64,000 nucleotides of DNA from Lytechinus pictus (taxonomy: Eukaryota). The stretch spans positions 992,001 to 1,056,000 of the forward strand of contig NC_087250.1 of NCBI RefSeq assembly GCF_037042905.1, given 5' to 3'. Position 1 is the stretch's first letter, and each line of letters opens with the position of its first letter. Position numbers and translations under genes: made by a program. Below the pieces are notes generated by a model. That model saw nothing but the letters and a program-made list of their open reading frames with translations. It was not told the origin of the DNA and did not search any database. Positions 2,922 through 51,408 of the stretch are shown here, piece by piece.

Positions 2922-3069
2922 ACTTTCAAACCTCAGGATAATGATTACAAGACCGTACGGGAGAAGGCTGCTTCACAAAGACGTGATGTAGAAAGAGCTT
3001 TGACTAGATTCATTGCAAAAACAGGAGATAATCAGACACTATTCCCTGGGGATAGTAATCTCTTCCCAT
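2922..3069 (+). CDS. TAF8: TAF8 coding exon 4 (TAF8_C region)
   Basis: CCAG acceptor, GTAAGT donor at 3070; DYKTVREKAASQRRDVERALTRFIAKTG is near-identical to the recalled vertebrate TAF8 motif. Confidence 0.95.
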
Positions 3070-4670
3070 GTAAGTAGATGGTATGATATTATTAACTGAT
3101 GATAGTAATCTCTTCCCATGTAAGTAGATGGTATGATATTATTAAGTGATGATAGTAATCTCTTCCCATGTAAGTAGATGGTATGATATTATTAAGTGAT
3201 GATAGTAATCTCTTTCCATGTAAGTAGATGGTATAATATTATTAAGTGATGATAGTAATCTCTTCCCATGTAAGTAGATGGTATGATATTATTAAGTGAT
3301 GATAGTAATCTCTTTCCATGTAAGTAGATGGTATGATATTATTAAGTGATGATAGTAATCTCTTTCCATGTAAGTAGATGGTATGATATTATTAACTGAT
3401 GATAGTAATCTCTTCCCATGTAAGTAGATAGTATGATATTATTAACTGATGATAGTAATCTCTTCCCATGTAAGTAGATAGTATGATATTATTAACTGAT
3501 GATAGTAATCTCTTCCCTTGTAAGTAGATGGTATGATATTATTAACTGATGATAGTAATCTCTTCCCATGTAAGTAGATGGTATGATATTATTAACTGAT
3601 GATAGTAATCTCTTCCCATGTAAGTAGATAGTATGATATTATTAACTGATGATAGTAATCTCTTTCCATGTAAGTAGATGGTATGATATTATTAACTGAT
3701 GATAGTAATCTCTTCCCATGTAAGTAGATAGTATGATATTATTAACTGATGATAGTAATCTCTTCCCATGTAAGTAGATGGTATGATATTATTAACTGAT
3801 GATAGTAATCTCTTCCCATGTAAGTAGATGGTATGATATTATTAACTGATGATAGTAATCTCTTCCCATGTAAGTAGATAGTATGATATTATTAACTGAT
3901 GATAGTAATCTCTTTCCATGTAAGTAGATGGTATGATATTATTAACTGATGATAGTAATCTCTTTCCATGTAAGTAGATGGTATGATATTATTAACTGAT
4001 GATAGTAATCTCTTTCCATGTAAGTAGATGGTATGATATTATTAACTGATGATAGTAATCTCTTTCCATGTAAGTAGATGGTATGATATTATTAACTGAT
4101 GATAGTAATCTCTTCCCATGTAAGTAGATGGAATGATATTATTAACTGATGATAGTAATCTCTTCCCATGTAAGTAGATGGAATGATATTATTAACTGAT
4201 GATAGTAATCTCTTCCCATGTAAGTAGATGGTATAATTTTATTAACTGATGATAGTAATCTCTTTCCATGTAAGTAGATGGTATGATATTATTAACTGAT
4301 GATAGTAATCTCTTTCCATGTAAGTAGATGGTATAATATTATTAACTGATGATAGTAATCTCTTTCCATGTAAGTAGATGGTATGATATTATTAACTGAT
4401 GATAGTAATCTCTTTCCATGTAAGTAGATAGTATGATATTATTAACTGATGATAGTAATCTCTTCCCATGTAAGTATATGGTATAATATTATTAACTGAT
4501 GATAGTAATCTCTTTCCATGTAAGTAGATGGTATAATATTATTAACTGATGATAGTAATCTCTTTCCATGTAAGTAGATGGTATGATATTATCAACTGAT
4601 GATAGTAATCTCTTTCCATGTATTAAAGTAGATGGCATGATATTATTAATCGACTATAGTAATCTCTTCC
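3051..4670 (+). repeat. 50-bp minisatellite (~32 copies) spanning the TAF8 exon 4/intron boundary
   Basis: Unit gatagtaatctcttcccatgtaagtagatggtatgatattattaactgat repeated with a 50-nt period, decaying after ~4620. Confidence 0.97.
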
Positions 4671-5320
4671 CTTTCAAATCAATGGCATGACAATATCGAC
4701 TGGGATATACTATTAACTGGTCAATAGTAACCTCTTTCCATATACATAGATGTTTGATATTATTGACTGGTATGTACTATTAACCGGGGATAGTAAACTA
4801 GAAAATACAAAACTCATGATGATATTTTATTGATATTTGTCAAACATTTATTAAACTTGATATAAATACCAAATTTTTCTCAGAGTGAACTTCTCCTTTA
4901 ATGCTGTAGGAAAGTAGTTGCAGCAAGCAATGAATACATGAGAAAGTCTTTAAAATCAAGGTTTATTGTCACCATAGATCTGAGTATTGTTTATTTACAT
5001 AAATCTATATCTGTGAAATCAAGAAATCTATTTCAGCTCAAAACATTCAAACTGAAGATGACCAACACAGATATACACATGTGGGACAGTATAATTCTAT
5101 TCCATAGAAAAGGGAATGCCATGCTTCTTTTGCTAATTTCACAGCAATTCCTCAAATCTTCCATAATCCTTTGGCACATATTCTTTTATTTATACATACA
5201 GATTGGTGGTCATATTATTAGATACAGTACAAACCTCATCTTGAAATTATTTACAACTGGCATGTAAGTCTAATATATTCAAAACAAAATTATATTTTTA
5301 TTTGTTGTTTTTTGCTGCAG

Positions 5321-6140: not shown

Positions 6141-6619
6141 GAGGCTGGTTGTCCATGTAAAACACAGGAACTGAAAAACATGGTCATGTGCTAAAGCATT
6201 CTTATATGAATATCAAAAGTATGGGATCTAACGGTATCCATTGGTCCAAACTTTTGCATATACGAAAGAAAAAGTAGAATTTGAAGAAGTTTGTCCTGTT
6301 TTATCTGTTGATTATTGCTGATTGTCGATCTACAAGATCTGGTAATGTTAGGGGATGCTAGGGACTTTGGGATAGTGGATTGATTGTAAGAATGGGCCTT
6401 GCAGATTAAGGTCTGTGTTCCAGCAAGTTCTGGACTTGGGCCTGTTTCATAAAGATCAATGAATGTACTGTTCATGTTAAGTATTTAAAATAAACTGGGA
6501 GTCCCATTAATTCAAAACAATAGGCTGCAACAAGTCATTTCAATGCTGGTGATAAAAGCGCAAATCCATCTTTGGATGCTTTCTTTGTGAATTTGGGCTA
6601 CAAAGAATGTAACCATATT

Positions 6620-7053
6620 GGCCCGAATTCACAAAGGTGGTTTTGAAAACCCACGGTTGAGTCCATGGTTTATGCAGATTTCCTGTATAAATTACGCTTA
6701 ATTTAGCGCGTATCGGGCGCGTGTGTAAAAAATGTCCAATGCTGATGCGCGCTTTTGTCACAGTGCGCCAAATCGATGCCTGTTGCCGTGGATATCCACG
6801 CTATTTTATTCATGAGTCTACTGTTTTCATTAATGAGTCCACTCTTCAAACAGTGGACTCATAAATAAAATAGCATATCTAACCATGGTAACAGGCATCG
6901 ATTTGGCGCACTGTGACAAAAATGCCCATTAGCATTGGACATTTTTACACACGCGCCCGATGCGCGCTAAATTAAGCGTAATTTATACAGGAAATCTGCA
7001 TAAACCATGGACTCAACCGTGGGTTTTCAAAACCACCTTTGTGAATTCGGGCC
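6620..7053. mobile_element. Palindromic MITE with GGCCC termini and 3-bp ATT duplication (PIF/Harbinger-like)
   Basis: Almost wholly self-complementary (ggcccgaattcacaaagg...cctttgtgaattcgggcc); ATT at 6617-6619 and 7054-7056. Confidence 0.85.
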
Positions 7054-7481
7054 ATTGTGTTTAATCATGTGTCATCTGATAATTTGAACACTGATTATCA
7101 AGTAACAAATAAAACTTTGATGTCAATAACAGCAAAGCCTTAAATGATCTGTAGAAATCTGAATCCTGTGGAGAGATTTGAATGCATTAGATACGAGTAT
7201 GTCAGAGTGATAGCCAAGTGTTCCACAAAATGTATTTACATCAGAAACAATTGATTTTATTTTTTTTTCATTCTGCAAGTGATACCTCAATTTCATATTT
7301 AGCTGATAAATTTTAATAGAAGAAGCAGACTAGCAATCATTGGTTAGTTTGCAATTAATAACTTGATTGGTTGGTTGATTGATGGTTGGATGGATGGTTG
7401 GATATGATGGTGGACACTGAAGAAGAGGGAATAGAGAGATGACTGAAGAATAACCAAATACAAGAGGAAGGTGCAAGCAGA

Positions 7482-9636
7482 AAATGAGAGGGGAGGGGAG
7501 TGTATACAATAGAGAATGAGAGGGGAGGGGAGTGTATACAATAGAGAATGAGAGGGGAGGGGAGTGTATACAATAGAGAATGAGAGGGGAGGGGAGTGTA
7601 TACAATAGAGAATGAGAGGGGAGGGGAGTGTATACAATAGAGAATGAGAGGGGAGGGGAGTGTATACAATAGAGAATGAGAGGGAGGGGAGTGTATACAA
7701 TAGAGAATGAGAGGGGAGGGGAGTGTATACAATAGAGAATGAGAGGGGAGGGGAGTGTATACAATAGAGAATGAGAGGGGAGGGGAGTGTATACAATAGA
7801 GAATGAGAGGGGAGGGGAGTGTATACAATAGAGAATGAGAGGGGAGGGGAGTGTATACAATAGAGAATGAGAGGGGAGGGGAGTGTATACAATAGAGAAT
7901 GAGAGGGGAGGGGAGTGTATACAATAGAGAATGAGAGGGGAGGGGAGTGTATACAATAGAGAATGAGAGGGGAGGGGAGTGTATACAATAGAGAATGAGA
8001 GGGAGGGGAGTGTATACAATAGAGAATGAGAGGGGAGGGGAGTGTATACAATAGAGAATGAGAGGGGAGGGGAGTGTATACAATAGAGAATGAGAGGGGA
8101 GGGGAGTGTATACAATAGAGAATGAGAGGGAGGGGAGTGTATACAATAGAGAATGAGAGGGGAGGGGAGTGTATACAATAGAGAATGAGAGGGGAGGGGA
8201 GTGTATACAATAGAGAATGAGAGGGGAGGGGAGTGTATACAATAGAGAATGAGAGGGGAGGGGAGTGTATACAATAGAGAATGAGAGGGGAGGGGAGTGT
8301 ATACAATAGAGAATGAGAGGGGAGGGGAGTGTATACAATAGAGAATGAGAGGGGAGGGGAGTGTATACAATAGAGAATGAGAGGGGAGGGGAGTGTATAC
8401 AATAGAGAATGAGAGGGGAGGGGAGTGTATACAATAGAGAATGAGAGGGGAGGGGAGTGTATACAATAGAGAATGAGAGGGGAGGGGAGTGTATACAATA
8501 GAGAATGAGAGGGGAGGGGAGTGTATACAATAGAGAATGAGAGGGGAGGGGAGTGTATACAATAGAGAATGAGAGGGGAGGGGAGTGTATACAATAGAGA
8601 ATGAGAGGGGAGGGGAGTGTATACAATAGAGAATGAGAGGGGAGGGGAGTGTATACAATAGAGAATGAGAGGGGAGGGGAGTGTATACAATAGAGAATGA
8701 GAGGGGAGGGGAGTGTATACAATAGAGAATGAGAGGGGAGGGGAGTGTATACAATAGAGAATGAGAGGGGAGGGGAGTGTATACAATAGAGAATGAGAGG
8801 GGAGGGGAGTGTATACAATAGAGAATGAGAGGGGAGGGGAGTGTATACAATAGAGAATGAGAGGGGAGGGGAGTGTATACAATAGAGAATGAGAGGGAGG
8901 GGAGTGTATACAATAGAGAATGAGAGGGGAGGGGAGTGTATACAATAGAGAATGAGAGGGGAGGGGAGTGTATACAATAGAGAATGAGAGGGGAGGGGAG
9001 TGTATACAATAGAGAATGAGAGGGGAGGGGAGTGTATACAATAGAGAATGAGAGGGGAGGGGAGTGTATACAATAGAGAATGAGAGGGGAGGGGAGTGTA
9101 TACAATAGAGAATGAGAGGGGAGGGGAGTGTATACAATAGAGAATGAGAGGGGAGGGGAGTGTATACAATAGAGAATGAGAGGGGAGGGGAGTGTATACA
9201 ATAGAGAATGAGAGGGGAGGGGAGTGTATACAATAGAGAATGAGAGGGAGGGGAGTGTATACAATAGAGAATGAGAGGGGAGGGGAGTGTATACAATAGA
9301 GAATGAGAGGGGAGGGGAGTGTATACAATAGAGAATGAGAGGGGAGGGGAGTGTATACAATAGAGAATGAGAGGGAGGGGAGTGTATACAATAGAGAATG
9401 AGAGGGGAGGGGAGTGTATACAATAGAGAATGAGAGGGGAGGGGAGTGTATACAATAGAGAATGAGAGGGGAGGGGAGTGTATACAATAGAGAATGAGAG
9501 GGGAGGGGAGTGTATACAATAGAGAATGAGAGGGGAGGGGAGTGTATACAATAGAGAATGAGAGGGGAGGGGAGTGTATACAATAGAGAATGAGAGGGGA
9601 GGGGAGTGTATACAATAGAGAATGAGAGGGGAGGGG
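7482..9636 (+). repeat. 32-bp G-rich minisatellite, left part (~67 copies)
   Basis: Unit aatgagaggggaggggagtgtatacaatagag, with occasional 31-bp variants. Confidence 0.98.
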
Positions 9637-11106
9637 TGGTTTGCTGAACAAACCTTAAAATTATGAATTTGTCTTTTTCTTTCACATTTTTATTATATGT
9701 ATTTTCAAGGTTTAATTTGTCACTTTGGTGCTACCCTGAAGCTTTCGTAAGTAATGTAATTCTGCTCATGAATATGCATTTCGCAGATGCCACGTTGTTA
9801 GTTTGCAGAGAACAGGGAGAAGGGACGCTTGAAAATGAAATTATCTTATTTTACTTGATGTTGACTGGGAAATGCCGCCCAAGAAGTAAGTTTGATGACA
9901 GAAATGTTATATTTTTTGGAGGTGCTAAAAGCTAGAGATATTTTTCAGTGAATGAGCAGAAAAAGTGCATTAAAAATCGTATGCAGATACTTGAACTGTA
10001 ATGAACACGCAGTATGTGTAATGAACGCCATAGATATGTGTAATGTACAATCAGTGGATGTGAAATGAACGCGATTAGCTATGCACACTTAATTAGGAGG
10101 TTAGTTGTACTTTATGAGAAGAGTGAAGTTGTGAAACTAAATAAAAGCTTTTAATAGATTATTTCAAGAAAAGTAAAGTAGTATGAGTTAAAGGAAAATT
10201 AAGCTTATGAAATGAACAAAGGTGAATTTTAGGAGCTTGATGGGCACGAATCGTGCGTGTATGGGCGTGGTCTTTAAATTGCGTGATTTGTTTACATTTA
10301 ATTATATTCAGTCAGATATATTTGAGTAAACATTTATAAAGCACTTTAAGAATTTGTGCGTTTGTAACCAAAATAATTTTGACTTGTTAAGACAATTTTT
10401 GGTCAGAAGTTTTTCATACGAACGAGGCTTAATTATGTGCAAGGTCATGTCAGGGTCACTCGTTCCGTTTTTCGCACATTCAATTTTAGTGTGCAACCGC
10501 TAGCTAAAGAAAGCTTTCGGTCTATATTTTAGATTTTTCTGATAATGTCAAAATTGGGATAAATAATAATGAAACACCTTGGTAATTTATTTCTTACCGG
10601 ACTTATTTGGATATAAGCTGAAGTTAGCAGACAAGTTTGCTGTCTGTTTACCTTTTAAGGTAATTTTGTTCAGAATATAGAAATTACTAAGTGGGAACGC
10701 AAAGTTGATTTAAAGGTATATATTTAAGCAGTTCACTTTGATTTATTGCAAATATGTATGCATGTATTTAAGTTAGTCTTTTTCAAGACGTTAAAGAAAA
10801 TGGACAAATTTTAAACTGGTTTTTCTATCGAGGAAAACTCGGATATTTGTTTATATATATTCGTTCTATACACCTGATATGAATGATAATTAGATTTATA
10901 TTCCTTATTGTTTAAAAGAGATGACAATTTTGGGAATATTATGAAAACATTTATTTTTGTCAAAGCATTGGACATATATTTATGATCCACTTCGTTTTCT
11001 TATGTTTATACAGATTGAATAATACACGGTAGTGAGCCTGCCTAACTATCCAATTTAAAGCGGCTTTCCTAGCCTCTGTTATTTCGTAGTCTTCGACGAT
11101 CCATCA
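9637..11106 (+). repeat. BEL LTR (1470 bp, TG...CA), forward copy
   Basis: Starts TGGTTTGC exactly where the inverted copy abuts the PPT; ends ...CCATCA immediately before the PBS-like TGGCGCCCAA. Confidence 0.88.
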
Positions 11107-11180
11107 TGGCGCCCAATGTGGGGCACGAACCCACGACCCTGAGATTAAGAGTCTCATGCTCTACCGACTGAGCTAACCGG
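11107..11180 (-). tRNA. Retrocopy of mature tRNA-Lys(CTT), nt 3-76 including CCA; not a normal tRNA gene
   Basis: Minus strand reads CCGGTTAGCTCAGTCGGTAGAGCATGAGACTCTTAATCTCAGGGTCGTGGGTTCGTGCCCCACATTGGGCGCCA: cloverleaf, anticodon CTT, encoded CCA, T at position 58, first 2 nt missing. Confidence 0.95.
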
Positions 11181-12644
11181 ATCGTCGAAGACTACGAAAT
11201 AACAGAGGCTAGGAAAGCCGCTTTAAATTGGATAGTTAGGCAGGCTCACTACCGTGTATTATTCAATCTGTATAAACATAAGAAAACGAAGTGGATCATA
11301 AATATATGTCCAATGCTTTGACAAAAATAAATGTTTTCATAATATTCCCAAAATTGTCATCTCTTTTAAACAATAAGGAATATAAATCTAATTATCATTC
11401 ATATCAGGTGTATAGAACGAATATATATAAACAAATATCCGAGTTTTCCTCGATAGAAAAACCAGTTTAAAATTTGTCCATTTTCTTTAACGTCTTGAAA
11501 AAGACTAACTTAAATACATGCATACATATTTGCAATAAATCAAAGTGAACTGCTTAAATATATACCTTTAAATCAACTTTGCGTTCCCACTTAGTAATTT
11601 CTATATTCTGAACAAAATTACCTTAAAAGGTAAACAGACAGCAAACTTGTCTGCTAACTTCAGCTTATATCCAAATAAGTCCGGTAAGAAATAAATTACC
11701 AAGGTGTTTCATTATTATTTATCCCAATTTTGACATTATCAGAAAAATCTAAAATATAGACCGAAAGCTTTCTTTAGCTAGCGGTTGCACACTAAAATTG
11801 AATGTGCGAAAAACGGAACGAGTGACCCTGACATGACCTTGCACATAATTAAGCCTCGTTCGTATGAAAAACTTCTGACCAAAAATTGTCTTAACAAGTC
11901 AAAATTATTTTGGTTACAAACGCACAAATTCTTAAAGTGCTTTATAAATGTTTACTCAAATATATCTGACTGAATATAATTAAATGTAAACAAATCACGC
12001 AATTTAAAGACCACGCCCATACACGCACGATTCGTGCCCATCAAGCTCCTAAAATTCACCTTTGTTCATTTCATAAGCTTAATTTTCCTTTAACTCATAC
12101 TACTTTACTTTTCTTGAAATAATCTATTAAAAGCTTTTATTTAGTTTCACAACTTCACTCTTCTCATAAAGTACAACTAACCTCCTAATTAAGTGTGCAT
12201 AGCTAATCGCGTTCATTTCACATCCACTGATTGTACATTACACATATCTATGGCGTTCATTACACATACTGCGTGTTCATTACAGTTCAAGTATCTGCAT
12301 ACGATTTTTAATGCACTTTTTCTGCTCATTCACTGAAAAATATCTCTAGCTTTTAGCACCTCCAAAAAATATAACATTTCTGTCATCAAACTTACTTCTT
12401 GGGCGGCATTTCCCAGTCAACATCAAGTAAAATAAGATAATTTCATTTTCAAGCGTCCCTTCTCCCTGTTCTCTGCAAACTAACAACGTGGCATCTGCGA
12501 AATGCATATTCATGAGCAGAATTACATTACTTACGAAAGCTTCAGGGTAGCACCAAAGTGACAAATTAAACCTTGAAAATACATATAATAAAAATGTGAA
12601 AGAAAAAGACAAATTCATAATTTTAAGGTTTGTTCAGCAAACCA
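11179..12644 (-). repeat. BEL LTR, inverted copy (3' LTR of the minus-strand element), lacking the terminal 4 nt
   Basis: Reverse complement of 9637-11102, with no differences seen by eye. Confidence 0.92.
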
Positions 12645-12657
12645 TCCTCCCCCCGCC
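12645..12657 (-). promoter_or_regulatory. Polypurine tract of the BEL element
   Basis: Minus strand GGCGGGGGGAGGA directly precedes the LTR 5'-TG. Confidence 0.85.
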
Positions 12658-12910
12658 AACAGTAGCGGAAAAGAGCTAAAATTCTCCTGACTGAATGAAT
12701 TCTGTAATTATTATTTTATTTTATTTTTGTTTACAGACCAGATGAAAAATATTCAAGTTTTGCACCGACATAAAATTCAGGAGTATCAAAAGCAACTTTC
12801 TTTCAAAAATTCAAATTTTGCACCGACATAAAATTCAGGAGTATCACAAGCAACTTTCTTTCCTCAATGGCATTGAAAAACCAAAACACAATTTATGAAC
12901 TCCATATTGT

Positions 12911-15900
12911 CTACTCCTCATACCCTTCTGCCGGATATATTACAACAATCTTCGAAATCGGCCGCTTATAATCAGTACCTTTAGATTGTACTTTAACTGT
13001 TCGAACTTTCCCATCAGTCCCAGGATACACTTGGATAACTTTACCCAATGTCCACTTTCCTCGAACTGCATTAGGGTCAGAGAGTATAACCACGTCATCG
13101 ATTCGGACGTTCCTTCTGTCACTGTTCCATTTTCGTCGTGGCACCAGTAGTGGAAAGACGTCACGCATCCAACTCTTCCAGTACGCGTCGACGATTCGCT
13201 GGACAAACTCAAAGCGATGTCTCGGGTTCTTCGTCTCTCTGAAGGGTCCTTGAGGGACTGCGCTCGAAGATCTTCCAAGCAAAAGATCGTTTGGACACAG
13301 ATATGCTCCATCATCGGGATCATTCGGAGTTCTTCCGATAGGGCGCTGGTTGACGAGATTTGCGACCTCTTGGAGACATGTATGCAACTCAAAGGGTGTG
13401 ACCAGTTGATCCCCGACTGCTTTCTTCAAGGCGATCTTGCAACTTTTAACTAACGCTTCAGCACATCCATTGTGATGCGGTGCAGATGGAGTGGTGAACT
13501 TCCATGTCGTTCCTCTCTCGGCGCAGAAGTCCTTTAACTCCTCATAGCTCCAACCTCTCACCATCTCCCGTAACTCTCTTTCTGCCCCTACGAATTGTGT
13601 ACCGTTGTCACTTAGCAGTAATGCAGGCTGACCCCGCACAGCAAAGAATCTTCGTAGTACCTGCATGAACTCCATGGATGAGCAATCAACGGCCACTTCA
13701 AGATGTACCGCTCTTGTATTCAGGCAGGTGAAGAGGACCCCATAGTGCTTGGCGGTCTTGTTCCTTCCAACTTTGACTGATATCGGTCCAAAATAGTCGA
13801 CAGATGAGAAGTGAAACGGTGGTGTATATGGGGCAACTCTCTCATCTGGTAGATCAGACATGACTTGTGACTCAACCTGATGCTCCATGCGTCGGCAAAT
13901 CACACACCTATACTTTACAGTCTTAGCCAGTTTATGAATATTCAGGATCCAGTATTGACGTCGAACCTTCGCTGCAGTAGCTGCCACGCCTCCGTGTCCT
14001 AGCTGATGCATATGTCTCGTTATCAGCACTGATACCCAAGCTCCATGTGGCAGCAGAGCAGGGTGTTTGTGCTCATAAGAAATCAGAGCCTTGTCTAGTC
14101 GCCCTCCAACTCTGATAATTCCCTCGTTGTCTATAAAAGGGCTGAGAGTCTTGAATTCTCCACTCTGTACACGTTGATACAAGGAACTCTGGGCTTCCTT
14201 AATTAGAAAGTGTTCAGCTTTCTGCAACTGAGTTGTCGATAAGTTTCCATCTCCAAGATTGACATTAGACTTTGCCCGAAGTACAGCTTTGAGCTTGTCG
14301 ATGAACTTTAAAACATAAGCCGTTACTCGGATCAGTTTTTTCCAGCTGGAGAATCTCTTGACATCGATCACATCATTGTTCTTGACTGAGATATGATTAA
14401 CCCTTCGTCGTTCTGCTTCAATCTCAGTCTCTGCTTCTGGAATAGCCTTTTCTGACGGCCATTCCTCGTAAGATCTGTACAAGAACGCAGGTCCTTGTTT
14501 CCATCTTTCTGAGAGCTTCCTTACTGGCAGGCCCCTGGAGACGTCATCTGCTGGGTTCAGCTCTCCGGGAACATACTTCCATTGTGCAGGGTTGGTATAA
14601 CTTTGGATTTCTCCAATCCTTGCTGCGACGAATGGCTTAAATCTCCTACCCTCACTTCGAATCCAGGAGAGGGCAATCATGCTATCAGTCATGAAGATGA
14701 TCTTTTCAGGCTTCAGACTCAGTTCTTTCATCACTGTTGTGTAGACTCTTGAAGCCATTACTGCCGCCTGAAGTTCAAGTCTAGGCACAGTCATCTTTTT
14801 CAGGGGAGCAACTCGAGATTTGGCAACTACAAATCTAACAGCATATTTACCATTTTCCAGCTTCCACTGCAAATACACACAGACTCCAAATGCTACCTCA
14901 GATGCATCAGCAAATATGCACAGTGAAGGGTGACCAACAGCCATTGGTGGAGTCAGGCATCTCTCATATTTGATATCATTCAAGTCCTGCATCTCTTTCA
15001 TGAATGTCACCCACCACTCCTGTAGATCGGGAGGCAGAAGTTCATCCCAATCATATCCTCTTTGCCACAACTGCTGCATTCCAATCTTTGCACGAACTAG
15101 AAAGGGGGCAGCAAATCCTATCGGATCAAATATTCGTGCAATTCTACTCAGAATCTTCCTTTTGGTAAGTACACTCGATTCTTCTTTTCCATCATTAGGA
15201 AAACTGCTGACTGTGTCCTTCAGTTTGTAGAAGAACATATCTTGCTGGTTGTCCCATGCTATTCCCAGCACTTTGTCTTCCAAGGCGGCTTCGAGGATTT
15301 TTGTTTTACCTTCCTTCTTACTTTCTCCTCTCAAAGCTTCGTTGCTGGTCCAGCCTTTAACTTTAAAGCCACCTTCCAAAAGTACTTGATCAATTTCACT
15401 TGTCAGCTGCTCTGCTTCGCCTACATCTCTCACCGAGTCACATATGTCGTCCATGTAGACACTCTCCTTCAGTACCTGTGCTGCTTTCGGATATCTAGCC
15501 TCTGCTGCTTCTGCTGTCATCCTGAGTGCCAACTGGGCCATAGCTGGTGCTGGCTTGTCGCCAAATGTAACAACTTTCATAATGTAAACATCTGGCTTTT
15601 TATCAGTCTCCATATCTCGCCACAGGTACCGATGTACATTCATATCTCTCTCAGGAATTGAGACCCTGTGATACATCTTAGAAATGTCACCACAAAATCC
15701 TACTTCATTCATCCGGAATCTCAGCAATACTCCAAGCAGATCATTGAGAAGATCTGGACCCTTTAGCCAATAGTCATTTAAGCAATGACCCTGATATGAT
15801 GAAGACGAATTGAAGACGATGCGTACAGGGGTACTTCTCTTCTCAGGCCGGAGAACAGCGTGGTGGGAAATGTAGTGAACAGGACCCTCGTACTGAGCTA

Positions 15901-18052
15901 CTTCATTCTCTGTTAACTTTCGTGCAAATCCATTCTCTATCAGTTCCCTCATTTGTTTTCTATATGCATCTGCATGGTCTGGGTTTCGAGCTAGTCTTTT
16001 CTCAGTCGAACACAGTACCTTCTCTGCTTGTGCTCGATTGTTAGGAAGTAGGTTGGGATCCTTTCTCCATGGATAAGCAATCTCCCACTTGTTTCCAACC
16101 TTTCTACTAGACTCTCTGATAATCTGCTCCTCAACCTTCTCCTGCTTGCTCAAAGGGCTTGGCTCACAATGGCAGGAACTAGACTGCACCCCCATAGATT
16201 CTGAGCTCCAGAAATCGGTCAAGTCAATTGGGGATGTCAACTTCACATGCAGCACATTCATCCTATCATTCCTTCTTTTGGGAGCACCAAAGATGACCCA
16301 GCCCAGTGGGGATTTTCGGGCTACTAACTGTCCCTTCTCTCTCGTTTCACCAAGATGCATCTTTGGGTAGTCAATACCTATGAGAAGATGAACTGACCCA
16401 CTTCCTCTGCGTAGATCCTCAGACTTCAGATTAAACTGCTTGGAAACTTCATTCATCTTCACTTGTGCAATATTTTCACTGATACAGGGTAATGCCACTG
16501 CTGCTAAAGAATGAATGGCATTGGTAGAGAGGGACCTCACTTTTATCTGATACTGTTTGGTTTCCATCTGCTCTTGCTCTCCACCAACCTTAGTGATTGT
16601 GATATTTATGTTGCTTCCCTTCAGATTCATCTCCTTAGCAACAGACATCTTGATGAGGCTTACTTGAGCTCCAGAGTCTAAGAGCACATTTCCCTTACAG
16701 ACTGCTCCTTGTTGCCCCAGGATCTCCGCTGTAACTACGGGTAACAGTGCCTCAGAGTTGCCCGCAAAGGCGACATCTACATTTCCACCTCGGACCTCTG
16801 TTGAAGCATGAAGGAGGGGGTGGTGGAAGTACTTGCATGGTTCTCCGGCAGTAGTTTCACTACATCGACGTTTCCGTTTACAGTTTGACATTCTGTGATC
16901 CTTACCAGCCTTCTTTAGACAGCTAAAACAGGCATGATGATCCTTGAGTAGCTTCAGTCTCTCGGATTGTGACATGGCTAAAAACTTACGACACTGATCA
17001 AGCCAATGTGATGATGTTTCACAGAGCCAGCATTTGTGAAATAACCTCTGGAATTTGTTTTCCTGGCTGGCTACTGTCTTCCCGACTAGATGTACACCAC
17101 TTGACTTCGAATCACTTCGGACTGGGGCCGAAGCTCTCATCCTTGACTTCAGTTCAACTGTAAGCCATGTCAGAAACATTTCAAAGCTTGCCTTGCCACT
17201 TGCCTCTTGATGCCTAAACCACACCAGTCGGTCTTCCGGGCTTAGCTTCCTTTCCATTATGGCAAGCATATGGCTATTGTTCAAATTTCCTGGCTGGTTG
17301 ATTTCCATGAGGGTATTGTAACTCCTCCGAACGAGATGCACAAACTCACAAAATCTTTCATCTTCTCCGCTTTTGAGTGGTTTGACTTTTGAGATGTCAT
17401 TGATTATAGCGTCGGCAACAAAGCGCTCATCTCCATATATCATGTCCAACTGTTCCCATGCTGCTTGGTAGTTATGCCCAATTCCTTTAATCAACTGCAA
17501 GGGTTTGCTCTGTAAACATGACCTCAGAATCATTAGGGCATCTCTATCCTCATACTGTCTGCCAACAGCATGTAAAAAATCTGCCTTGAAAATGCAGTAA
17601 TCACGGATGTTGCCATCAAAGGTGGGAAGTTTAGGCCTTTCCATCCTATAAACAGATCCTGACATTCTCCTTCCTGCTTCAGGAGGCTGATTTGTCTGTC
17701 TTGGTGACTGATCTTGCTGTTCATCTGCTGATAAAGTTGTTTCCATACTCTGATGGCTTGTCGATGCTCTAAGATGATGCTCTTGGAGCTGCTGTGCTTC
17801 TCTGTGGCTCTCATTATCTTTGCAATAGTCTCTTTCAAGGATCTGCAGCTTCAAAAATGAATTGTGGCACTCTTCCATCCACAACTCTTCTCTTTCAAAT
17901 TCCTCGTCATCCTCTAGCACTTCCGAATAACTGTCATGCTTATTTTGTAAATCCTCAAAAGCACCAGCATACTGTGCAAACGATTCCTGAACTTCTGGAA
18001 CAGGTCGCTCTCCATCGATCAAGCTCTGAAGGGCCTTTCCAAACCTGGACAA
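12911..18052 (-). CDS. BEL/Pao Gag-Pol polyprotein (Gag, 3 zinc knuckles, protease, RT, RNase H, integrase)
   Basis: KLPTFDG Gag motif; CWLC...H...C, CFSCL...H...C and C...C...HHPLLH knuckles; LLDSGA protease; YMDD RT; FADAS and PRLELQAA RNase H; H..GH...CVIC plus SDNGT integrase; BEL-type C-terminus (WTLGKVIQVYPGTDGKVRTV). The true start is probably ATG 18110 across a 1-nt frameshift. Confidence 0.96.
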   Translation of the reverse strand: MSRFGKALQSLIDGERPVPEVQESFAQYAGAFEDLQNKHDSYSEVLEDDEEFEREELWMEECHNSFLKLQILERDYCKDNESHREAQQLQEHHLRASTSHQSMETTLSADEQQDQSPRQTNQPPEAGRRMSGSVYRMERPKLPTFDGNIRDYCIFKADFLHAVGRQYEDRDALMILRSCLQSKPLQLIKGIGHNYQAAWEQLDMIYGDERFVADAIINDISKVKPLKSGEDERFCEFVHLVRRSYNTLMEINQPGNLNNSHMLAIMERKLSPEDRLVWFRHQEASGKASFEMFLTWLTVELKSRMRASAPVRSDSKSSGVHLVGKTVASQENKFQRLFHKCWLCETSSHWLDQCRKFLAMSQSERLKLLKDHHACFSCLKKAGKDHRMSNCKRKRRCSETTAGEPCKYFHHPLLHASTEVRGGNVDVAFAGNSEALLPVVTAEILGQQGAVCKGNVLLDSGAQVSLIKMSVAKEMNLKGSNINITITKVGGEQEQMETKQYQIKVRSLSTNAIHSLAAVALPCISENIAQVKMNEVSKQFNLKSEDLRRGSGSVHLLIGIDYPKMHLGETREKGQLVARKSPLGWVIFGAPKRRNDRMNVLHVKLTSPIDLTDFWSSESMGVQSSSCHCEPSPLSKQEKVEEQIIRESSRKVGNKWEIAYPWRKDPNLLPNNRAQAEKVLCSTEKRLARNPDHADAYRKQMRELIENGFARKLTENEVAQYEGPVHYISHHAVLRPEKRSTPVRIVFNSSSSYQGHCLNDYWLKGPDLLNDLLGVLLRFRMNEVGFCGDISKMYHRVSIPERDMNVHRYLWRDMETDKKPDVYIMKVVTFGDKPAPAMAQLALRMTAEAAEARYPKAAQVLKESVYMDDICDSVRDVGEAEQLTSEIDQVLLEGGFKVKGWTSNEALRGESKKEGKTKILEAALEDKVLGIAWDNQQDMFFYKLKDTVSSFPNDGKEESSVLTKRKILSRIARIFDPIGFAAPFLVRAKIGMQQLWQRGYDWDELLPPDLQEWWVTFMKEMQDLNDIKYERCLTPPMAVGHPSLCIFADASEVAFGVCVYLQWKLENGKYAVRFVVAKSRVAPLKKMTVPRLELQAAVMASRVYTTVMKELSLKPEKIIFMTDSMIALSWIRSEGRRFKPFVAARIGEIQSYTNPAQWKYVPGELNPADDVSRGLPVRKLSERWKQGPAFLYRSYEEWPSEKAIPEAETEIEAERRRVNHISVKNNDVIDVKRFSSWKKLIRVTAYVLKFIDKLKAVLRAKSNVNLGDGNLSTTQLQKAEHFLIKEAQSSLYQRVQSGEFKTLSPFIDNEGIIRVGGRLDKALISYEHKHPALLPHGAWVSVLITRHMHQLGHGGVAATAAKVRRQYWILNIHKLAKTVKYRCVICRRMEHQVESQVMSDLPDERVAPYTPPFHFSSVDYFGPISVKVGRNKTAKHYGVLFTCLNTRAVHLEVAVDCSSMEFMQVLRRFFAVRGQPALLLSDNGTQFVGAERELREMVRGWSYEELKDFCAERGTTWKFTTPSAPHHNGCAEALVKSCKIALKKAVGDQLVTPFELHTCLQEVANLVNQRPIGRTPNDPDDGAYLCPNDLLLGRSSSAVPQGPFRETKNPRHRFEFVQRIVDAYWKSWMRDVFPLLVPRRKWNSDRRNVRIDDVVILSDPNAVRGKWTLGKVIQVYPGTDGKVRTVKVQSKGTDYKRPISKIVVIYPAEGYEE

Positions 18053-18213
18053 CTTGGCTTTTGCCCCTCTCCGCTGCAGGCGCAGATTTCTTAACCTTCT
18101 CGGCTGACATATTTCTTAAAGACTTCTGATCCCTGATGTAAAGAGTCGTCAGATCCAGACAGCAGACTACTTGTGGTGACCATCAGACCTCTTCCCAGAT
18201 GAAAGAAATTGAA

Positions 18214-19956
18214 TTGCACAGTATGCTGGTGCTTTTGAGGATTTACAAAATAAGCATGACAGTTATTCGGAAGTGCTAGAGGATGACGAGGAATTTGAAA
18301 GAGAAGAGTTGTGGATGGAAGAGTGCCACAATTCATTTTTGAAGCTGCAGATCCTTGAAAGAGACTATTGCAAAGATAATGAGAGCCACAGAGAAGCACA
18401 GCAGCTCCAAGAGCATCATCTTAGAGCATCGACAAGCCATCAGAGTATGGAAACAACTTTATCAGCAGATGAACAGCAAGATCAGTCACCAAGACAGACA
18501 AATCAGCCTCCTGAAGCAGGAAGGAGAATGTCAGGATCTGTTTATAGGATGGAAAGGCCTAAACTTCCCACCTTTGATGGCAACATCCGTGATTACTGCA
18601 TTTTCAAGGCAGATTTTTTACATGCTGTTGGCAGACAGTATGAGGATAGAGATGCCCTAATGATTCTGAGGTCATGTTTACAGAGCAAACCCTTGCAGTT
18701 GATTAAAGGAATTGGGCATAACTACCAAGCAGCATGGGAACAGTTGGACATGATATATGGAGATGAGCGCTTTGTTGCCGACGCTATAATCAATGACATC
18801 TCAAAAGTCAAACCACTCAAAAGCGGAGAAGATGAAAGATTTTGTGAGTTTGTGCATCTCGTTCGGAGGAGTTACAATACCCTCATGGAAATCAACCAGC
18901 CAGGAAATTTGAACAATAGCCATATGCTTGCCATAATGGAAAGGAAGCTAAGCCCGGAAGACCGACTGGTGTGGTTTAGGCATCAAGAGGCAAGTGGCAA
19001 GGCAAGCTTTGAAATGTTTCTGACATGGCTTACAGTTGAACTGAAGTCAAGGATGAGAGCTTCGGCCCCAGTCCGAAGTGATTCGAAGTCAAGTGGTGTA
19101 CATCTAGTCGGGAAGACAGTAGCCAGCCAGGAAAACAAATTCCAGAGGTTATTTCACAAATGCTGGCTCTGTGAAACATCATCACATTGGCTTGATCAGT
19201 GTCGTAAGTTTTTAGCCATGTCACAATCCGAGAGACTGAAGCTACTCAAGGATCATCATGCCTGTTTTAGCTGTCTAAAGAAGGCTGGTAAGGATCACAG
19301 AATGTCAAACTGTAAACGGAAACGTCGATGTAGTGAAACTACTGCCGGAGAACCATGCAAGTACTTCCACCACCCCCTCCTTCATGCTTCAACAGAGGTC
19401 CGAGGTGGAAATGTAGATGTCGCCTTTGCGGGCAACTCTGAGGCACTGTTACCCGTAGTTACAGCGGAGATCCTGGGGCAACAAGGAGCAGTCTGTAAGG
19501 GAAATGTGCTCTTAGACTCTGGAGCTCAAGTAAGCCTCATCAAGATGTCTGTTGCTAAGGAGATGAATCTGAAGGGAAGCAACATAAATATCACAATCAC
19601 TAAGGTTGGTGGAGAGCAAGAGCAGATGGAAACCAAACAGTATCAGATAAAAGTGAGGTCCCTCTCTACCAATGCCATTCATTCTTTAGCAGCAGTGGCA
19701 TTACCCTGTATCAGTGAAAATATTGCACAAGTGAAGATGAATGAAGTTTCCAAGCAGTTTAATCTGAAGTCTGAGGATCTACGCAGAGGAAGTGGGTCAG
19801 TTCATCTTCTCATAGGTATTGACTACCCAAAGATGCATCTTGGTGAAACGAGAGAGAAGGGACAGTTAGTAGCCCGAAAATCCCCACTGGGCTGGGTCAT
19901 CTTTGGTGCTCCCAAAAGAAGGAATGATAGGATGAATGTGCTGCATGTGAAGTTGA
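18214..19956 (+). pseudogene. Inverted, truncated duplicate of the BEL gag-protease region
   Basis: Reverse complement of 16237-17979; the 579-aa ORF is identical to the minus-strand polyprotein until it runs into the minisatellite. Confidence 0.93.
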
Positions 19957-20660
19957 AGGGGAGGGGAGTGTATACAATAGAGAATGAGAGGGGAGGGGAG
20001 TGTATACAATAGAGAATGAGAGGGGAGGGGAGTGTATACAATAGAGAATGAGAGGGGAGGGGAGTGTATACAATAGAGAATGAGAGGGGAGGGGAGTGTA
20101 TACAATAGAGAATGAGAGGGGAGGGGAGTGTATACAATAGAGAATGAGAGGGGAGGGGAGTGTATACAATAGAGAATGAGAGGGGAGGGGAGTGTATACA
20201 ATAGAGAATGAGAGGGGAGGGGAGTGTATACAATAGAGAATGAGAGGGGAGGGGAGTGTATACAATAGAGAATGAGAGGGGAGGGGAGTGTATACAATAG
20301 AGAATGAGAGGGGAGGGGAGTGTATACAATAGAGAATGAGAGGGGAGGGGAGTGTATACAATAGAGAATGAGAGGGGAGGGGAGTGTATACAATAGAGAA
20401 TGAGAGGGGAGGGGAGTGTATACAATAGAGAATGAGAGGGGAGGGGAGTGTATACAATAGAGAATGAGAGGGGAGGGGAGTGTATACAATAGAGAATGAG
20501 AGGGGAGGGGAGTGTATACAATAGAGAATGAGAGGGGAGGGGAGTGTATACAATAGAGAATGAGAGGGGAGGGGAGTGTATACAATAGAGAATGAGAGGG
20601 GAGGGGAGTGTATACAATAGAGAATGAGAGGGAAGGGGAGTGTATACAATAGAGAATGAG
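19957..20660 (+). repeat. 32-bp G-rich minisatellite, right part (~22 copies)
   Basis: Same unit and orientation as 7482-9636. Confidence 0.98.
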
Positions 20661-22402
20661 AAGAAAACAGTGCAGAATGTGGGCCAGAGATGAGAGAGAG
20701 AAAAAATTAATACTGAGAACACAGTTATGTTCAAATGGGAGCTGAAATATTGAAATTTGAAAAGAGATTGAGTAAAAGAGGGATCATTAATAAATGTAAG
20801 TTTGAGATAAGGCACAATATAAGGGGTGAAGCTTTGTTAAAATATCAAAAAGTCACACGATGTAAAAAGGAACAGTATATGTTTGTTATATTATGACTTG
20901 ATGTGATGAAACAACTTATAGCAAAGATATTACCTCCTCTCATCTCATTCTCTTCTTTTGAATTTTCTACACCTCCCTCTCTTAAGATCCAAGCCCCTTT
21001 ATTTCCTAACTAATCTATACCTTTTATTTCCTTCAAAAGGAAAAAAAAAGAAAAGTAATAATGGTGGGCTGTCAAAAACCTCAAAGTTTCAAAGATAGCT
21101 TAGAATTTGGTTTTTAGATTTATGACATAGTAAACAACATCCTTTTGCATTATCCTTATGGTGATAAAAGGCTGCTAACAGCTTTTCGTAAGCTGTTTTC
21201 AAAACTTTTCAATTTTACGGCAAATCAAAATCATGTAGATCATACGTGTAAATTGTATTGCACATGGAATATATTGTTTTCAATAAACTTTCCTGAAACA
21301 TGCTGGGATAAGAAGTCACGCAGTAAAAAAAAAAAAAGAATCTTTTGCTTTGAGTTATCCATGGAATTTCAAAATACATTATACTCATACCCAATGAGAG
21401 AAACACAACAGTATTATTTATTCTTAATTTATTGAACATTTGGAGACAAAAATTAAAAAATGAATGTCAAACACATGTTGTAATATCCATTTCTACAAAA
21501 CGTTAATTATCTTGAATATGAAGTCATATAGTTCCCTGTGACATACAATCAATTGAGTGTATCGGTACTTCTATGGCAATGCATGTAAGAAAAGTTACAG
21601 TCAATTGCAACATTAATCATATCTTTTTATGTTACACCCCCCACCCACTAGACTTGAATAACCCCTTTTCAAATAGGCATGCATGTACAAACCATCAGAA
21701 ACATTTCAAATATACAAAACAAAATAAAGAGATTAGAATTACATAGGAATCAATAGCAAAACGGCATTGGTTAACTATATAAGAATGCAATCTATACATG
21801 CATGGATCCAGAGTTTGAATTTACAAAACGGGGTGTAAATTGGCACAAAAATTTTACAAACAAAAAATGTTTGAAAAAGTATTTAAAAAGATAATCGCTC
21901 CCAAATGAAAGCATTTTACAGGGACCGTCCTCTTTTTGCAGGGTAGGTGCCCACCTTCTGTGCAAACCTGGATCAGCACAAAAAATAATTACTATTGATT
22001 TATCACAAAGGAATAGAAAATTAGAAAAATAAACAAATGTACTATGAAATGAAATAAATTAACGTGACTAATATTCAAACTAAACATCAAAATAAATTTC
22101 ATGAAATGTGCCAGCTGTCAATACTCTAATTGCCAGTCAGCTATGACCTAGTGAAATTCAATTTTGTGATCGTCTGATTTAAAAGGACACACAACACAAC
22201 AACTGAAGGAAGCACTGAATTTACTACAAGATAAGATGAAATAATACCAACAGTCTTTTCACAAAGCTGTTTATATGACTTAACACAGAACCGCTGTCCC
22301 ATTGTTGTGCTAAATTGAGATTCTCAAATTCTTAACATGATGTGAGTGCTCTTCCTATAGCTCTAATCAAACCTTTAACATGCAGATTCAGATGCTTTTT
22401 AA

Positions 22403-28299: not shown

Positions 28300-28969
28300 C
28301 TGTGAAGGATAAAAAGAATTTATAAACTCAAATAATGCTAGGGTATATTTACAGATAAGGTGTGATGATAATAATTATGATGGTAATGATGTTAACAATG
28401 ATGATGTGTATGGTGGTGACAATGATGACCAAGATGATGATCATAATGATGCTGCTGCTGCTGATATTGATGATGATGGTGATGATGATGAATAACCTAC
28501 TTGAATTCAAGTCATTTGACACCCAAACCATTAGTATTATCTTCTGCTCTTTGAATTTGGAATATTACAACCTATTCTTACATTTTGAAATGCAGCTACA
28601 AGCTTACCAAACGTTTGCCAGAATGAATAACAAGTGCATATGCAGCCTTGATCCCAACTAATTCACCTCATTCATTATTAAAAGGTGAAAGGAATATGGT
28701 TCTCAGGAAAAAAAACCCCATTATACAAATTGAAATTGAATCTGTAAAGAGGCCTATAATATATTTATGAATTAATTTTGTTTAAGGCTACAGTTGCTTC
28801 TTCAATACATGAATAATAATACAATAAAAAAACACCACACAAATCAAAGATAAAATGTATACTTTCAAACACTTTTCTTTGTTATTACACCACCGATCAC
28901 TGAAGGTTTCAGGACAGTAAGATCAATTCAGAGTAATTCCCGGCTATGATTTGTATATCCATTTCTATC

Positions 28970-30860
28970 ATAGTTTCAAAGCTCTAAACATTATTTTAAA
29001 TCACTATCTTTTCACATACATAGTTTCAAAGCTCTATACATTATTTTAAATCACTATCTTTTCACATACATAGAACTTTTCAAAGCTCTATACATTATTT
29101 TAAATCACTATCTTTTCACATACATAGTTTCAAAGCTCTATACATTATTTTAAATCACTATCTTTTCACATACATAGTTTCAAAGCTCTATACATTATTT
29201 TAAATCACTATCTTTTCACATACATAGTTTCAAAGCTCTATACATTATTTTAAATCACTATCTTTTCACATACATAGTTTCAAAGCTCTATACATTATTT
29301 TAAATCACTATCTTTTCACATACATAGTTTCAAAGCTCTATACATTATTTTAAATCACTATCTTTTCACATACATAGTTTCAAAGCTCTATACATTATTT
29401 TAAATCACTATCTTTTCACATACATAGTTTCAAAGCTCTATACATTATTTTAAATCACTATCTTTTCACATACATAGTTTCAAAGCTCTATACATTATTT
29501 TAAATCACTATCTTTTCACATACATAGTTTCAAAGCTCTATACATTATTTTAAATCACTATCTTTTCACATACATAGTTTCAAAGCTCTATACATTAATT
29601 TAAATCACTATCTTTTCACATACATAGTTTCAAAGCTCTATACATTATTTTAAATCACTATCTTTTCACATACATAGTTTCAAAGCTCTATACATTATTT
29701 TAAATCACTATCTTTTCACATACATAGTTTCAAAGCTCTATACATCATTTTAAATCACTATCTTTTCACATACATAGTTTCAAAGCTCTATACATTATTT
29801 TAAATCACTATCTTTTCACATACATAGTTTCAAAGCTCTATACATTATTTTAAATCACTATCTTTTCACATACAGTTTCAAAGCTCTATACATTATTTTA
29901 AATCACTATCTTTTCACATACATAGTTTCAAAGCTCTATACATTATTTTAAATCACTATCTTTTCACATACATAGTTTCAAAGCTCTATACATTATTTTA
30001 AATCACTATCTTTTCACATACATAGTTTCAAAGCTCTATACATTATTTTAAATCACTATCTTTTCACATACATAGTTTCAAAGCTCTATACATTATTTTA
30101 AATCACTATCTTTTCACATACATAGTTTCAAAGCTCTATACATTATTTTAAATCACTATCTTTTCACATACATAGTTTCAAAGCTCTATATACATTATTT
30201 TAAATCACTATCTTTTCACATACATAGTTTCAAAGCTCTATACATTATTTTAAATCACTATCTTTTCACATACATAGTTTCAAAGCTCTATACATTATTT
30301 TAAATCACTATCTTTTCACATACATAGTTTCAAAGCTCTATATACATTATTTTAAATCACTATCTTTTCACATACATAGTTTCAAAGCTCTATACATTAT
30401 TTTAAATCACTATCTTTTCACATACATAGTTTCAAAGCTCTATACATTATTTTAAATCACTATCTTTTCACATACATAGTTTCAAAGCTCTATACATTAT
30501 TTTAAATCACTATCTTTTCACATACATAGTTTCAAAGCTCTATACATTATTTTAAATCACTATCTTTTCACATACATAGTTTCAAAGCTCTATACATTAT
30601 TTTAAATCACTATCTTTTCACATACATAGTTTCAAAGCTCTATACATTATTTTAAATCACTATCTTTTCACATACATAGTTTCAAAGCTCTATACATTAT
30701 TTTAAATCACTATCTTTTCACATACATAGTTTCAAAGCTCTATACATTATTTTAAATCACTATCTTTTCACATACATAGTTTCAAAGCTCTATACATTAT
30801 TTTAAATCACTATCTTTTCACATACATAGTTTCAAGGCTCTATATATTATTTTAAATTAT
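28970..30860 (+). repeat. 50-bp AT-rich minisatellite (~38 copies) in TMED intron 3
   Basis: Unit atagtttcaaagctctatacattattttaaatcactatcttttcacatac. Confidence 0.97.
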
Positions 30861-34600: not shown

Positions 34601-36145
34601 TATATGTAGCTGATAGAGCAAAGCCTACTCTTTCCTATCCAAGTCATTGCAAGAAAATAAAATCGACTGTACTATATAGTAGAAATGCCCTTTTGCCTCA
34701 ATGGGTGATTCAATATGGTGTAATTTCCAATAATATGCAATAAACATAATATAGAGGGGGAGAGGTTGACTAAGACAGCCCCTGAGAGGGCTAGGTTTCG
34801 ATGTGCAAGCGCTTCTTAATAATATGTAGCTGATAGACCAAAGCCCACGCTTTCCTCTCCAATTAATAGCAAGAAAATAAAATTGGCTGTATGATATACT
34901 GTAGTAGAAATGCCCTTATGCCTCAATGGGTGATCCAAAATGGTGAAATTTCCAATAAATAGGCAATATACATGATATAGAGGGGGGTGACTTAGACAGC
35001 ACCTTAGAGGGCTAGGGTTCGATGTGATTGCGCTTATTTATGTAGCTGGTAGAACGAACTCTACCCTTTCAAATCAATAAAATGGGGTGTACTATAAAGC
35101 ACAAACGCTTTTTTTGCCTCAATGTTGGGTCCAAAATGGTGAATTTCAAAATAAATTAGCAATAAGCGAAAGGGGGAAGGGTGACTTCCACAGCCCCCCC
35201 CCCCCCCCGAGAGGGGTAGGCTTCGATGTGCTACTTCTTTTTATGTAGCTGGTAGAACAAAACCTACTCTTTTCCTCTCCAAGTGGTTTTAAAGTAATTA
35301 AAGTGGCTGTACTGTATAACAGAAATGCCTTTTGCCTCAATGTGTGCTTCAAAAAAATTCCAGTGATTTTCCAATAAATAGGCAATTTACAACAAACATG
35401 ATATAGCCACGGGGGGGGGGGGGGGGGGGACTTCGACACCCCCACCCCCTGATAATGTTAGGCTTCGATGTGCCAACATTTTGTTTTATGTAGCTGATAG
35501 AGAAAAACCTACTCTTAACTCTGCAAGTGATTAAACTAGCGGAGATAATTGCATTTAAGTTTTAACTATACATTATACATGTTATACGTATTAATGTATG
35601 AAAATGCATACAAAAAGCGACATTTCTGAAATTGAAGTATTCAAGTTTGATACCTTATAAATTTGCTAAAAAGAATGATACAGATTTAGAATTTCATCCA
35701 CATGATAATAGTATATCAATAAAGTTTTCTGGAACATTTCAAGGTAATTGATTCATTTTTCTTAGAATTATGTAAGATCATGTATTTGCAAAATTTTTAA
35801 TTTTTGGGAATTTTTTTTTTACAAAAAATGCATTTTTCTACTAAAAATCTCAGCCAAATGACCTACTTATTCTCTATAAATAGTACCAAATTGTAGGGAA
35901 TTTATTTGGCTTTTATATGACACTAATTTTATGGCAATTGAATGCTTATGTCAAAATCTATGTACGAATATTCAAATTTTATGAAAATTTGGTGGCCATT
36001 TTGAAAAAAGCGCCCTCACAGGTCAATTTTCAGGATACAGCCTGTTTACCTCATATATTCATATTCAGCGTAAAAAACTGGTCTCGTGCCACTATATGAA
36101 AATTTCTCCTCCGAGTGGCACCTTGCTCAATTATAACCCGGACTA
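31666..36145. mobile_element. 4.5-kb non-autonomous fold-back DNA transposon (TAG...CTA termini, Academ-like)
   Basis: Long diverged inverted arms starting tagtccggg / cccggacta, AAA on both flanks, internal ~180-190-bp subrepeats that flip orientation near 33775; no transposase ORF. Confidence 0.8.
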
Positions 36146-36611
36146 AAAAGCATTTTACAGGAATGAATTATTATATTGTATTTGTGCCTTTTTACATTGG
36201 TCAAATAAATATTACTACTACTACTACTATTACTACTACTACTACTACGACTACTACTACTACTACTANNNNNNNNNNNNNNNNNNNNNNNNNNNNNNNN
36301 NNNNNNNNNNNNNNNNNNNNNNNNNNNNNNNNNNNNNNNNNNNNNNNNNNNNNNNNNNNNNNNNNNNNNNNNNNNNNNNNNNNNNNNNNNNNNNNNNNNN
36401 NNNNNNNNNNNNNNNNNNNNNNNNNNNNNNNNNNNNNNNNNNNNNNNNNNNNNNNNNNNNNNNNNNNNNNNNNNNNNNNNNNNNNNNNNNNNNNNNNNNN
36501 NNNNNNNNNNNNNNNNNNNNNNNNNNNNNNNNNNNNNNNNNNNNNNNNNNNNNNNNNNNNNNNNNNNNNNNNNNNNNNNNNNNNNNNNNNNNNNNNNNNN
36601 NNNNNNNNNTA

Positions 36612-42334: not shown

Positions 42335-42337
42335 TAT

Positions 42338-47090: not shown

Positions 47091-47101
47091 CCAATTCTAA
47101 T

Positions 47102-51385: not shown

Positions 51386-51408
51386 CCCATTTCCTTTTCT
51401 CTTTTCAG

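Follow-up and report, generated by a model that had tools for sequence, protein, structure and literature searches.

A probable read-through intermediate of reverse transcription, with a near-complete copy of its tRNA-Lys(CTT) primer, in a BEL/Pao insert of the Lytechinus pictus genome

One of the closest described counterparts of the locus reported here is the termination of plus-strand strong-stop DNA in HIV-1, whose reverse transcription is primed by tRNA-Lys3. The primer binding site (PBS) of this system comprises 18 nucleotides (nt) derived from tRNA nt 59-76, and position 58 is decisive: the 1-methyladenosine at this position (m1A58) normally stops plus-strand strong-stop synthesis after 18 nt, while strands that read through it carry extra sequence that is unable to pair after transfer, and transfer fails (PMC8599865). 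The present locus lies in a 64,000-nt stretch of the Lytechinus pictus assembly GCF_037042905.1 (contig NC_087250.1, positions 992,001 to 1,056,000), referred to below as the window, to which all coordinates refer. It resembles the HIV-1 case in its tRNA primer, its 18-nt PBS, the importance of position 58 and a read-through plus strand that would have failed at transfer, but it is chromosomal DNA of an invertebrate BEL/Pao element instead of the product of an assay, the primer is tRNA-Lys(CTT), and nearly the whole tRNA has been copied. The copy forms one corner of a 10,320-nt insert (9637-19956) within a 32-nt satellite, and this insert probably preserves an aberrant intermediate in the reverse transcription of a young L. 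pictus BEL/Pao element, namely read-through plus-strand strong-stop DNA captured at a chromosome break in the satellite.

Three other described phenomena bear on this locus. In RNA sequencing, m1A causes both arrest and misincorporation by reverse transcriptase (RT), and the mismatches are low in C when the 3' neighbour of the modified base is a G (PMC4787781). A mismatch at the m1A site is also what is found here, in an m1A-G context, and the base is a T, which fits this pattern; the published signature is nonetheless a population statistic obtained with laboratory enzymes, whereas the window would hold a single event by the enzyme of the element, indistinguishable from the copying of a U58 template. 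In yeast, replication intermediates of Ty1 complementary DNA (cDNA) are inserted at double-strand breaks, a process that does not require two long terminal repeat (LTR) ends, can bring in nucleotides found only in cDNA and can use single-stranded intermediates as donors (PMC11372161 and work cited there). The insert described here is comparable in these respects and differs by its length of 10.3 kb, its two hairpin turns, its near-complete tRNA copy and its occurrence in an animal genome assembly. Lastly, the inversion circles generated by autointegration contain inverted element duplications with short asymmetric loops (PMC7197481), as does the insert. In those circles an LTR end is joined to an internal site, in contrast to the tRNA-to-LTR and internal-to-internal junctions found here, and autointegration was ruled out as the origin of the insert because no LTR terminus is joined to an internal target site.

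The single steps invoked below, i.e., the m1A58 stop, read-through, self-priming and cDNA capture at breaks, are already known from retrovirus biochemistry or yeast genetics. It is unusual to find them together in a record left naturally in a chromosome, here by a BEL/Pao element of an invertebrate, and a search of the literature found no earlier description of a chromosome in which an LTR, a whole tRNA altered at position 58 and an inverted LTR follow one another. Olsen and Swanstrom (J Virol, 1985, "A new pathway in the generation of defective retrovirus DNA") are said to have cloned defective avian retroviral DNA with inverted LTRs and to have explained it by aberrant strong-stop DNA; this is an unconfirmed lead and is not used as evidence here.

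Positions 11107-11180 of the window are the reverse complement of mature tRNA-Lys(CTT) from nt 3 to nt 76, including the CCA, and the copy begins at the base that directly follows the terminal CA of a 1470-nt LTR (9637-11106). Read on the minus strand, the sequence runs from tRNA nt 3 to the discriminator G, then to the CCA, and from there directly into the complement of the LTR end. ARAGORN calls a tRNA-Lys(CTT) on the minus strand at 11107-11182; the two extra 5' bases of this call belong to the right arm of the palindrome described below and are unpaired with the 3' acceptor strand. The sole Rfam match across the 64 kb is that of the tRNA model to this copy, at 52.6 bits (gathering score 29; E = 7.5e-10 for 2.5 kb). 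Minimum free energy folding of the 76 nt yields no cloverleaf and a z-score of only -1.29, the covariance model being the relevant test for such a sequence. ARAGORN, Rfam and the minus-strand reading are all in agreement with the original prediction, which had described the palindrome loop as tRNA-Lys(CTT) nt 3-76 with CCA, starting at the terminal CA of the LTR.

The first 18 nt of the copy (11107-11124, plus strand) constitute the PBS, complementary to tRNA-Lys(CTT) nt 59-76 including the CCA; this 18-mer occurs once in the window, against 0.02 occurrences expected by chance. The read-through part follows on the same strand (11125-11180) and is the complement of the tRNA from nt 58 to nt 3, its final GG (11179-11180) being common to the right palindrome arm. 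Its first base, window position 11125, is the 19th from the tRNA 3' end, that is, tRNA position 58, and reads T in the tRNA sense where the Rfam covariance-model consensus has a conserved A. The copy lacks the attributes of a functional tRNA gene: the acceptor stem (nt 1-7 with 66-72) is incomplete, with nt 1-2 replaced by unpaired arm sequence, a CCA is encoded, no T-run lies downstream, and A58 is missing. An ordinary tRNA gene was ruled out on these four grounds. The PBS position, the CCA, which is absent from matching genes, and the lack of nt 1-2 give good support to an origin of the loop by reverse transcription of the mature primer tRNA, and the finding thereby names tRNA-Lys(CTT) as the primer of this BEL/Pao family.

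Natural tRNA-Lys(CTT) sequences were collected for comparison by a scan of metagenome contigs for the T arm and 3' acceptor strand of the window copy, with any base allowed at position 58. This gave 119 matches in 114 contigs, with an A at position 58 in 118 of them and a T in the remaining one; CCA follows the discriminator in four of the 119, which is about the chance level. Across nt 3-57 and 59-73 the window copy agrees fully with twelve of these matches, all of them environmental tRNA-Lys(CTT) genes. Each of the twelve begins with GC (nt 1-2), has an A at position 58, lacks a CCA and is followed within 15 nt by at least four T, such a T-run being a mark of genes transcribed by RNA polymerase III; one of them sits in a cluster of four tRNA genes. 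Relative to the conserved invertebrate-type tRNA-Lys(CTT), the window copy displays three differences: nt 1-2 are absent, CCA is added, and A58 is replaced by T. Two further claims of the original prediction are borne out by this comparison, namely that position 58 is altered, as judged from both the Rfam consensus and 118 of the 119 natural matches, and that a mature primer was copied by RT, given that the CCA is absent from the twelve matching genes and that the change from A58 to T is the sole difference besides.

The only T58 match (contig L090, 4165-4237) is gene-like and otherwise identical in sequence, and has neither CCA nor T-run; other copies in the sample series of L090 carry A58. 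It shows that T58 variants of tRNA-Lys(CTT) occur in nature. Two other environmental contigs, L076 (about 545-593) and L077 (64-138, minus strand), contain tRNA-Lys(CTT) copies that are partial or diverged and have CCA at their end. Both keep A58, and one or two A and then TGT follow the CCA; these may be other retro-copies of mature tRNA beside LTR-like ends.

Although the 74-nt feature singled out by the original prediction is real, its scope was incomplete, as the feature belongs to a composite of 10.3 kb in which a second perfect palindrome is present. On one strand, the insert consists of a sense LTR, the tRNA complement, an antisense LTR, a polypurine tract (PPT), antisense gag-pol, a turn and 1743 nt of sense gag. 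The sense LTR (9637-11106, plus strand) is bounded by TG and CA and extends from U3 nt 1 to the end of U5, and it forms the left arm of the first palindrome. The right arm (11179-12644, minus strand) is an antisense LTR comprising nt 1-1466, without the terminal 4 nt, and is 100% complementary to 9637-11102, so that the exact arms measure 1466 nt with 0 mismatches and enclose an asymmetric loop of 76 nt, the tRNA copy. At the junction between the tRNA and the right arm there is a 2-nt GG/CC overlap (11179-11180), and the last 4 nt of the LTR are lost in the right arm; both details had been predicted and are confirmed by the limits of the arms. The outer end of this palindrome is U3 nt 1 (9637), whose mirror position, 12644, abuts the PPT (12645-12657, minus strand), located directly upstream of the LTR in the element sense. 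No further copy of the LTR is present within the 64-kb window.

The antisense gag-pol (12911-18110, minus strand) leads into the second turn. The loop of the corresponding palindrome (17980-18213, minus strand) has 234 nt and takes in the leader of the element and the first part of gag, with 18213 as the end of the antisense strand. It is followed by an inverted duplicate of 16237-17979 (18214-19956, plus strand, i.e., in element sense), which covers part of gag and the protease, is 1743 nt long and 100% complementary, with 0 mismatches between the arms, and adjoins the satellite without an LTR end. The satellite itself lies on the same strand and in phase on both sides of the insert. Its left part (7479-9636, plus strand; Tandem Repeats Finder) breaks off at unit position 20, and a phase check of the final 96 nt gave 0 mismatches. 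The right part (19957-20661, plus strand) starts at unit position 11; unit positions 11-20 (10 nt) are hence found on both sides. At the left junction, the satellite has a run of purines similar to the PPT of the element, with no exact overlap between the two. Just upstream of the satellite, the region 6610-7063 contains short nested inverted repeats, with 122-nt arms that are 97% identical and 99-nt arms that are 87% identical.

The nature of the element is apparent from its coding region. Within gag-pol, a minus-strand frame of 1713 codons (18052-12911) is open and matches the Pfam families Peptidase_A17 (7.6e-50), DUF5641 (9.2e-25) and DUF1759 (7.3e-11), as well as RVT_1, rve, Integrase_H2C2 and an aspartyl protease, which is the domain content of a BEL/Pao gag-pol (DUF1759 gag, aspartyl protease, RT, Peptidase_A17, integrase and DUF5641). 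The product is identical to a RefSeq protein of L. pictus at 1706 of 1713 positions, and its relatives are BEL/Pao-type proteins of echinoderms and other metazoans. Its 90% cluster has 11 members, six of them of 1732 amino acids, on several chromosome-scale scaffolds; compared with these 1732-amino-acid sister models, the gag-pol of the window copy contains 0 in-frame stops and 1 frame break. The element is hence a young multi-copy BEL/Pao retrotransposon (Belpaoviridae) of L. pictus. Its ends also conform to the type, with an LTR bounded by TG and CA, a PBS beside U5 that can pair with a tRNA 3' end, and a PPT beside U3. The two direct LTRs and the short integrase target-site duplication of a standard insertion are, however, missing. 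This copy is instead a rearranged product, as its LTRs are inverted and adjacent, its right end is internal and its flanks share 10 nt.

The limits of the left arm coincide with those of a known intermediate. Its 5' end is U3 nt 1, the PPT border; from the base after U5 onward it continues as the complement of the mature tRNA 3' end with CCA; and it goes past tRNA position 58, as far as nt 3. The extent of the arm is exactly that of plus-strand strong-stop DNA. On the other strand, the tRNA with its CCA is joined to the complement of U5, which corresponds to the RNA-DNA junction of minus-strand strong-stop DNA. A probable sequence of events is as follows. Minus-strand synthesis would have been primed by tRNA-Lys(CTT). 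Plus-strand strong-stop DNA, starting from the PPT, would then have copied the LTR and, without making the 18-nt stop, passed m1A58 and run on to tRNA nt 3, with RT placing an A opposite position 58, hence a T in the tRNA sense. The 56 extra nt would be unable to pair after plus-strand transfer, which would make the molecule a dead end. Its stranded 3' end would subsequently have been joined to minus-strand sequence at the 2-nt GG/CC overlap, 4 nt inside U5.

Several routes could have produced this junction. The 3' end may have folded back and primed its own extension, followed by copying of the remaining RNA or of the co-packaged genome; self-primed (hairpin) RT products are also inverted duplications with short asymmetric loops. 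It may otherwise have switched template, or jumped, onto the end of another plus strand, or a flap may have been removed and the strand ligated to the 5' end of its own template. The simple switch to U5 put forward in the original prediction thus retains its observed junction, but it is one of several routes, as the right arm continues into the PPT and gag-pol. At the far end, the antisense strand would have turned back, or jumped end to end, without microhomology and been extended by 1743 nt. The whole product would have been captured at a chromosome break, as suggested by the fact that the left end alone is an LTR terminus and that the flanks share 10 nt, in place of a short integrase duplication. 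It is conceivable, though somewhat short of an even chance, that the chromosome holds a complete failed intermediate of reverse transcription as one continuous strand, composed of strong-stop DNA, primer tRNA, minus strand and turned-back plus strand, with m1A58 recorded as a DNA substitution.

Alternative explanations concern both the origin of the T at position 58 and the structure as a whole. The same read-through could have taken place on a primer transcribed from a rare T58 variant of the tRNA-Lys(CTT) gene; no m1A58 would be possible on such a tRNA, and RT would meet no stop, such that one cause would account for both the T and the read-through. The copy in L090, from an environmental eukaryote, is gene-like and otherwise identical, and lends this explanation some substance. 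It is nevertheless unlikely, as only one of the 119 natural copies carries T58 and this one is without a T-run terminator, while misincorporation opposite m1A58 requires no special gene. In the T loop, T54 is paired with A58, so that tRNAs with U58 are expected to be unstable and rare. It has to be considered as well that the primer was unmodified, that A58 was copied correctly during the read-through and that the T arose from a later mutation or from a random polymerase or consensus error, since a single base change is not by itself attributable to a cause. There is little room for this, and we regard it as quite improbable: the 2 x 3209 nt (6418 nt) of palindrome arms contain 0 mismatches, which makes later mutation very rare in the insert and a later random substitution at position 58 (0 mismatches in both the 1466-nt and the 1743-nt palindrome) unlikely, and the sole change among 71 comparable positions hits a known site of RT stop and misincorporation. 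The T at position 58 is a probable scar of m1A58 misincorporation, as the original prediction proposed, with a T that fits the m1A-G mismatch pattern; that claim needs tempering in so far as a primer from a rare T58 gene would give the same base and would explain T and read-through with no misincorporation at all.

With respect to the structure itself, one or both palindromes could be artefacts of assembly or library preparation, arising for instance from chimeras formed in long reads or during amplification, in which case the locus would in truth be simpler. Two perfect palindromes within 10 kb, inside a satellite array that is hard to assemble, invite this suspicion, and inverted chimeras are a known class of artefact. 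Fold-back reads or missed adapters give symmetric centres or adapter loops, though, and neither is found here: both loops are asymmetric and biological in content (the tRNA with its CCA and the 234-nt leader of the element), the arm ends coincide with landmarks of reverse transcription, and the satellite has the same strand and phase on either side. Even if an artefact were involved, an LTR joined to the complement of a whole tRNA must have existed as DNA. We hold such an artefact to be improbable, and the earlier argument against a pure assembly artefact holds insofar as the asymmetric tRNA loop does speak against a sequencing fold-back. There is, finally, a very slim chance that the full tRNA complement is inherited in the element family, or that an ordinary tRNA gene, the head of a short interspersed element (SINE) or a retro-copy made by a long interspersed element (LINE) came to lie at the LTR end by accident. 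Retro-copies of tRNAs do exist, as tailless retropseudogenes, but these are typically truncated at the 3' end (PMC5322556), in contrast to the complete 3' end here, and two environmental contigs contain CCA-bearing tRNA-Lys-like copies. The gene hallmarks (nt 1-2, A58 and T-run terminator) are absent from the window copy, a CCA is present, and no base separates the copy from the CA of the LTR. As for inheritance, a family with at least six copies with open 1732-amino-acid frames evidently replicates, which 56 unpaired nt after the PBS should hinder (PMC8599865). A tRNA-derived SINE or a LINE-made tailless retro-copy was ruled out on account of the complete 3' end, the exact start after the LTR and the lack of a SINE body.

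Several points weigh against the interpretation of the insert as a captured read-through intermediate. It draws on this one copy of the element and on the structure of the insert as assembled. Instability in chromosomes would be expected of long, perfect palindromes whose spacers are short. Microhomology was looked for at the second turn and none was found, and the sequence does not tell the order of events or the enzymes that acted at the two turns. The comparison of tRNAs is made with environmental eukaryotic genes instead of the host's own, and the natural T58 variant gene in L090 also counts on this side.

The locus would show that the RT of the element can cross a whole folded, modified tRNA in vivo. 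If the chromosome does hold a complete failed intermediate with m1A58 recorded as a substitution, genomes may contain a readable archive that tells which primers retroelement enzymes used in vivo, how these were modified and how the enzymes switched templates, and the CCA-bearing tRNA-Lys copies of the two environmental contigs hint at recurrence. The locus also suggests a survey in which genomes would be searched for tRNA complements of more than 18 nt beside LTRs, and the base at position 58 and the end points tabulated. For annotators, the proposed origin offers an explanation for a perfect palindrome in which they would otherwise see a mere misassembly.

The window also contains other repeats and elements. 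A second LTR element, of the Ty3/gypsy-like type and unrelated to the first, occupies 41964-54213 and has 372-nt LTRs that are 100% identical. Its gag-like open reading frame (ORF) has helix-hairpin-helix and zinc-knuckle matches, its pol ends in a PHD finger, and a third ORF (51409-52722) matches a TatD-related DNase, not a usual passenger of LTR elements. Two different 50-nt tandem arrays are found at 3051-4671 and 28969-30857, with about 32 and 38 copies, respectively, and 96-98% matches. Inverted arms of about 2 kb and 80% identity (31666-33675 and 34117-36145) carry 209-211-nt tandem repeats and adjoin a run of N at 36269-36609; a second such run is located at 55429-55562.
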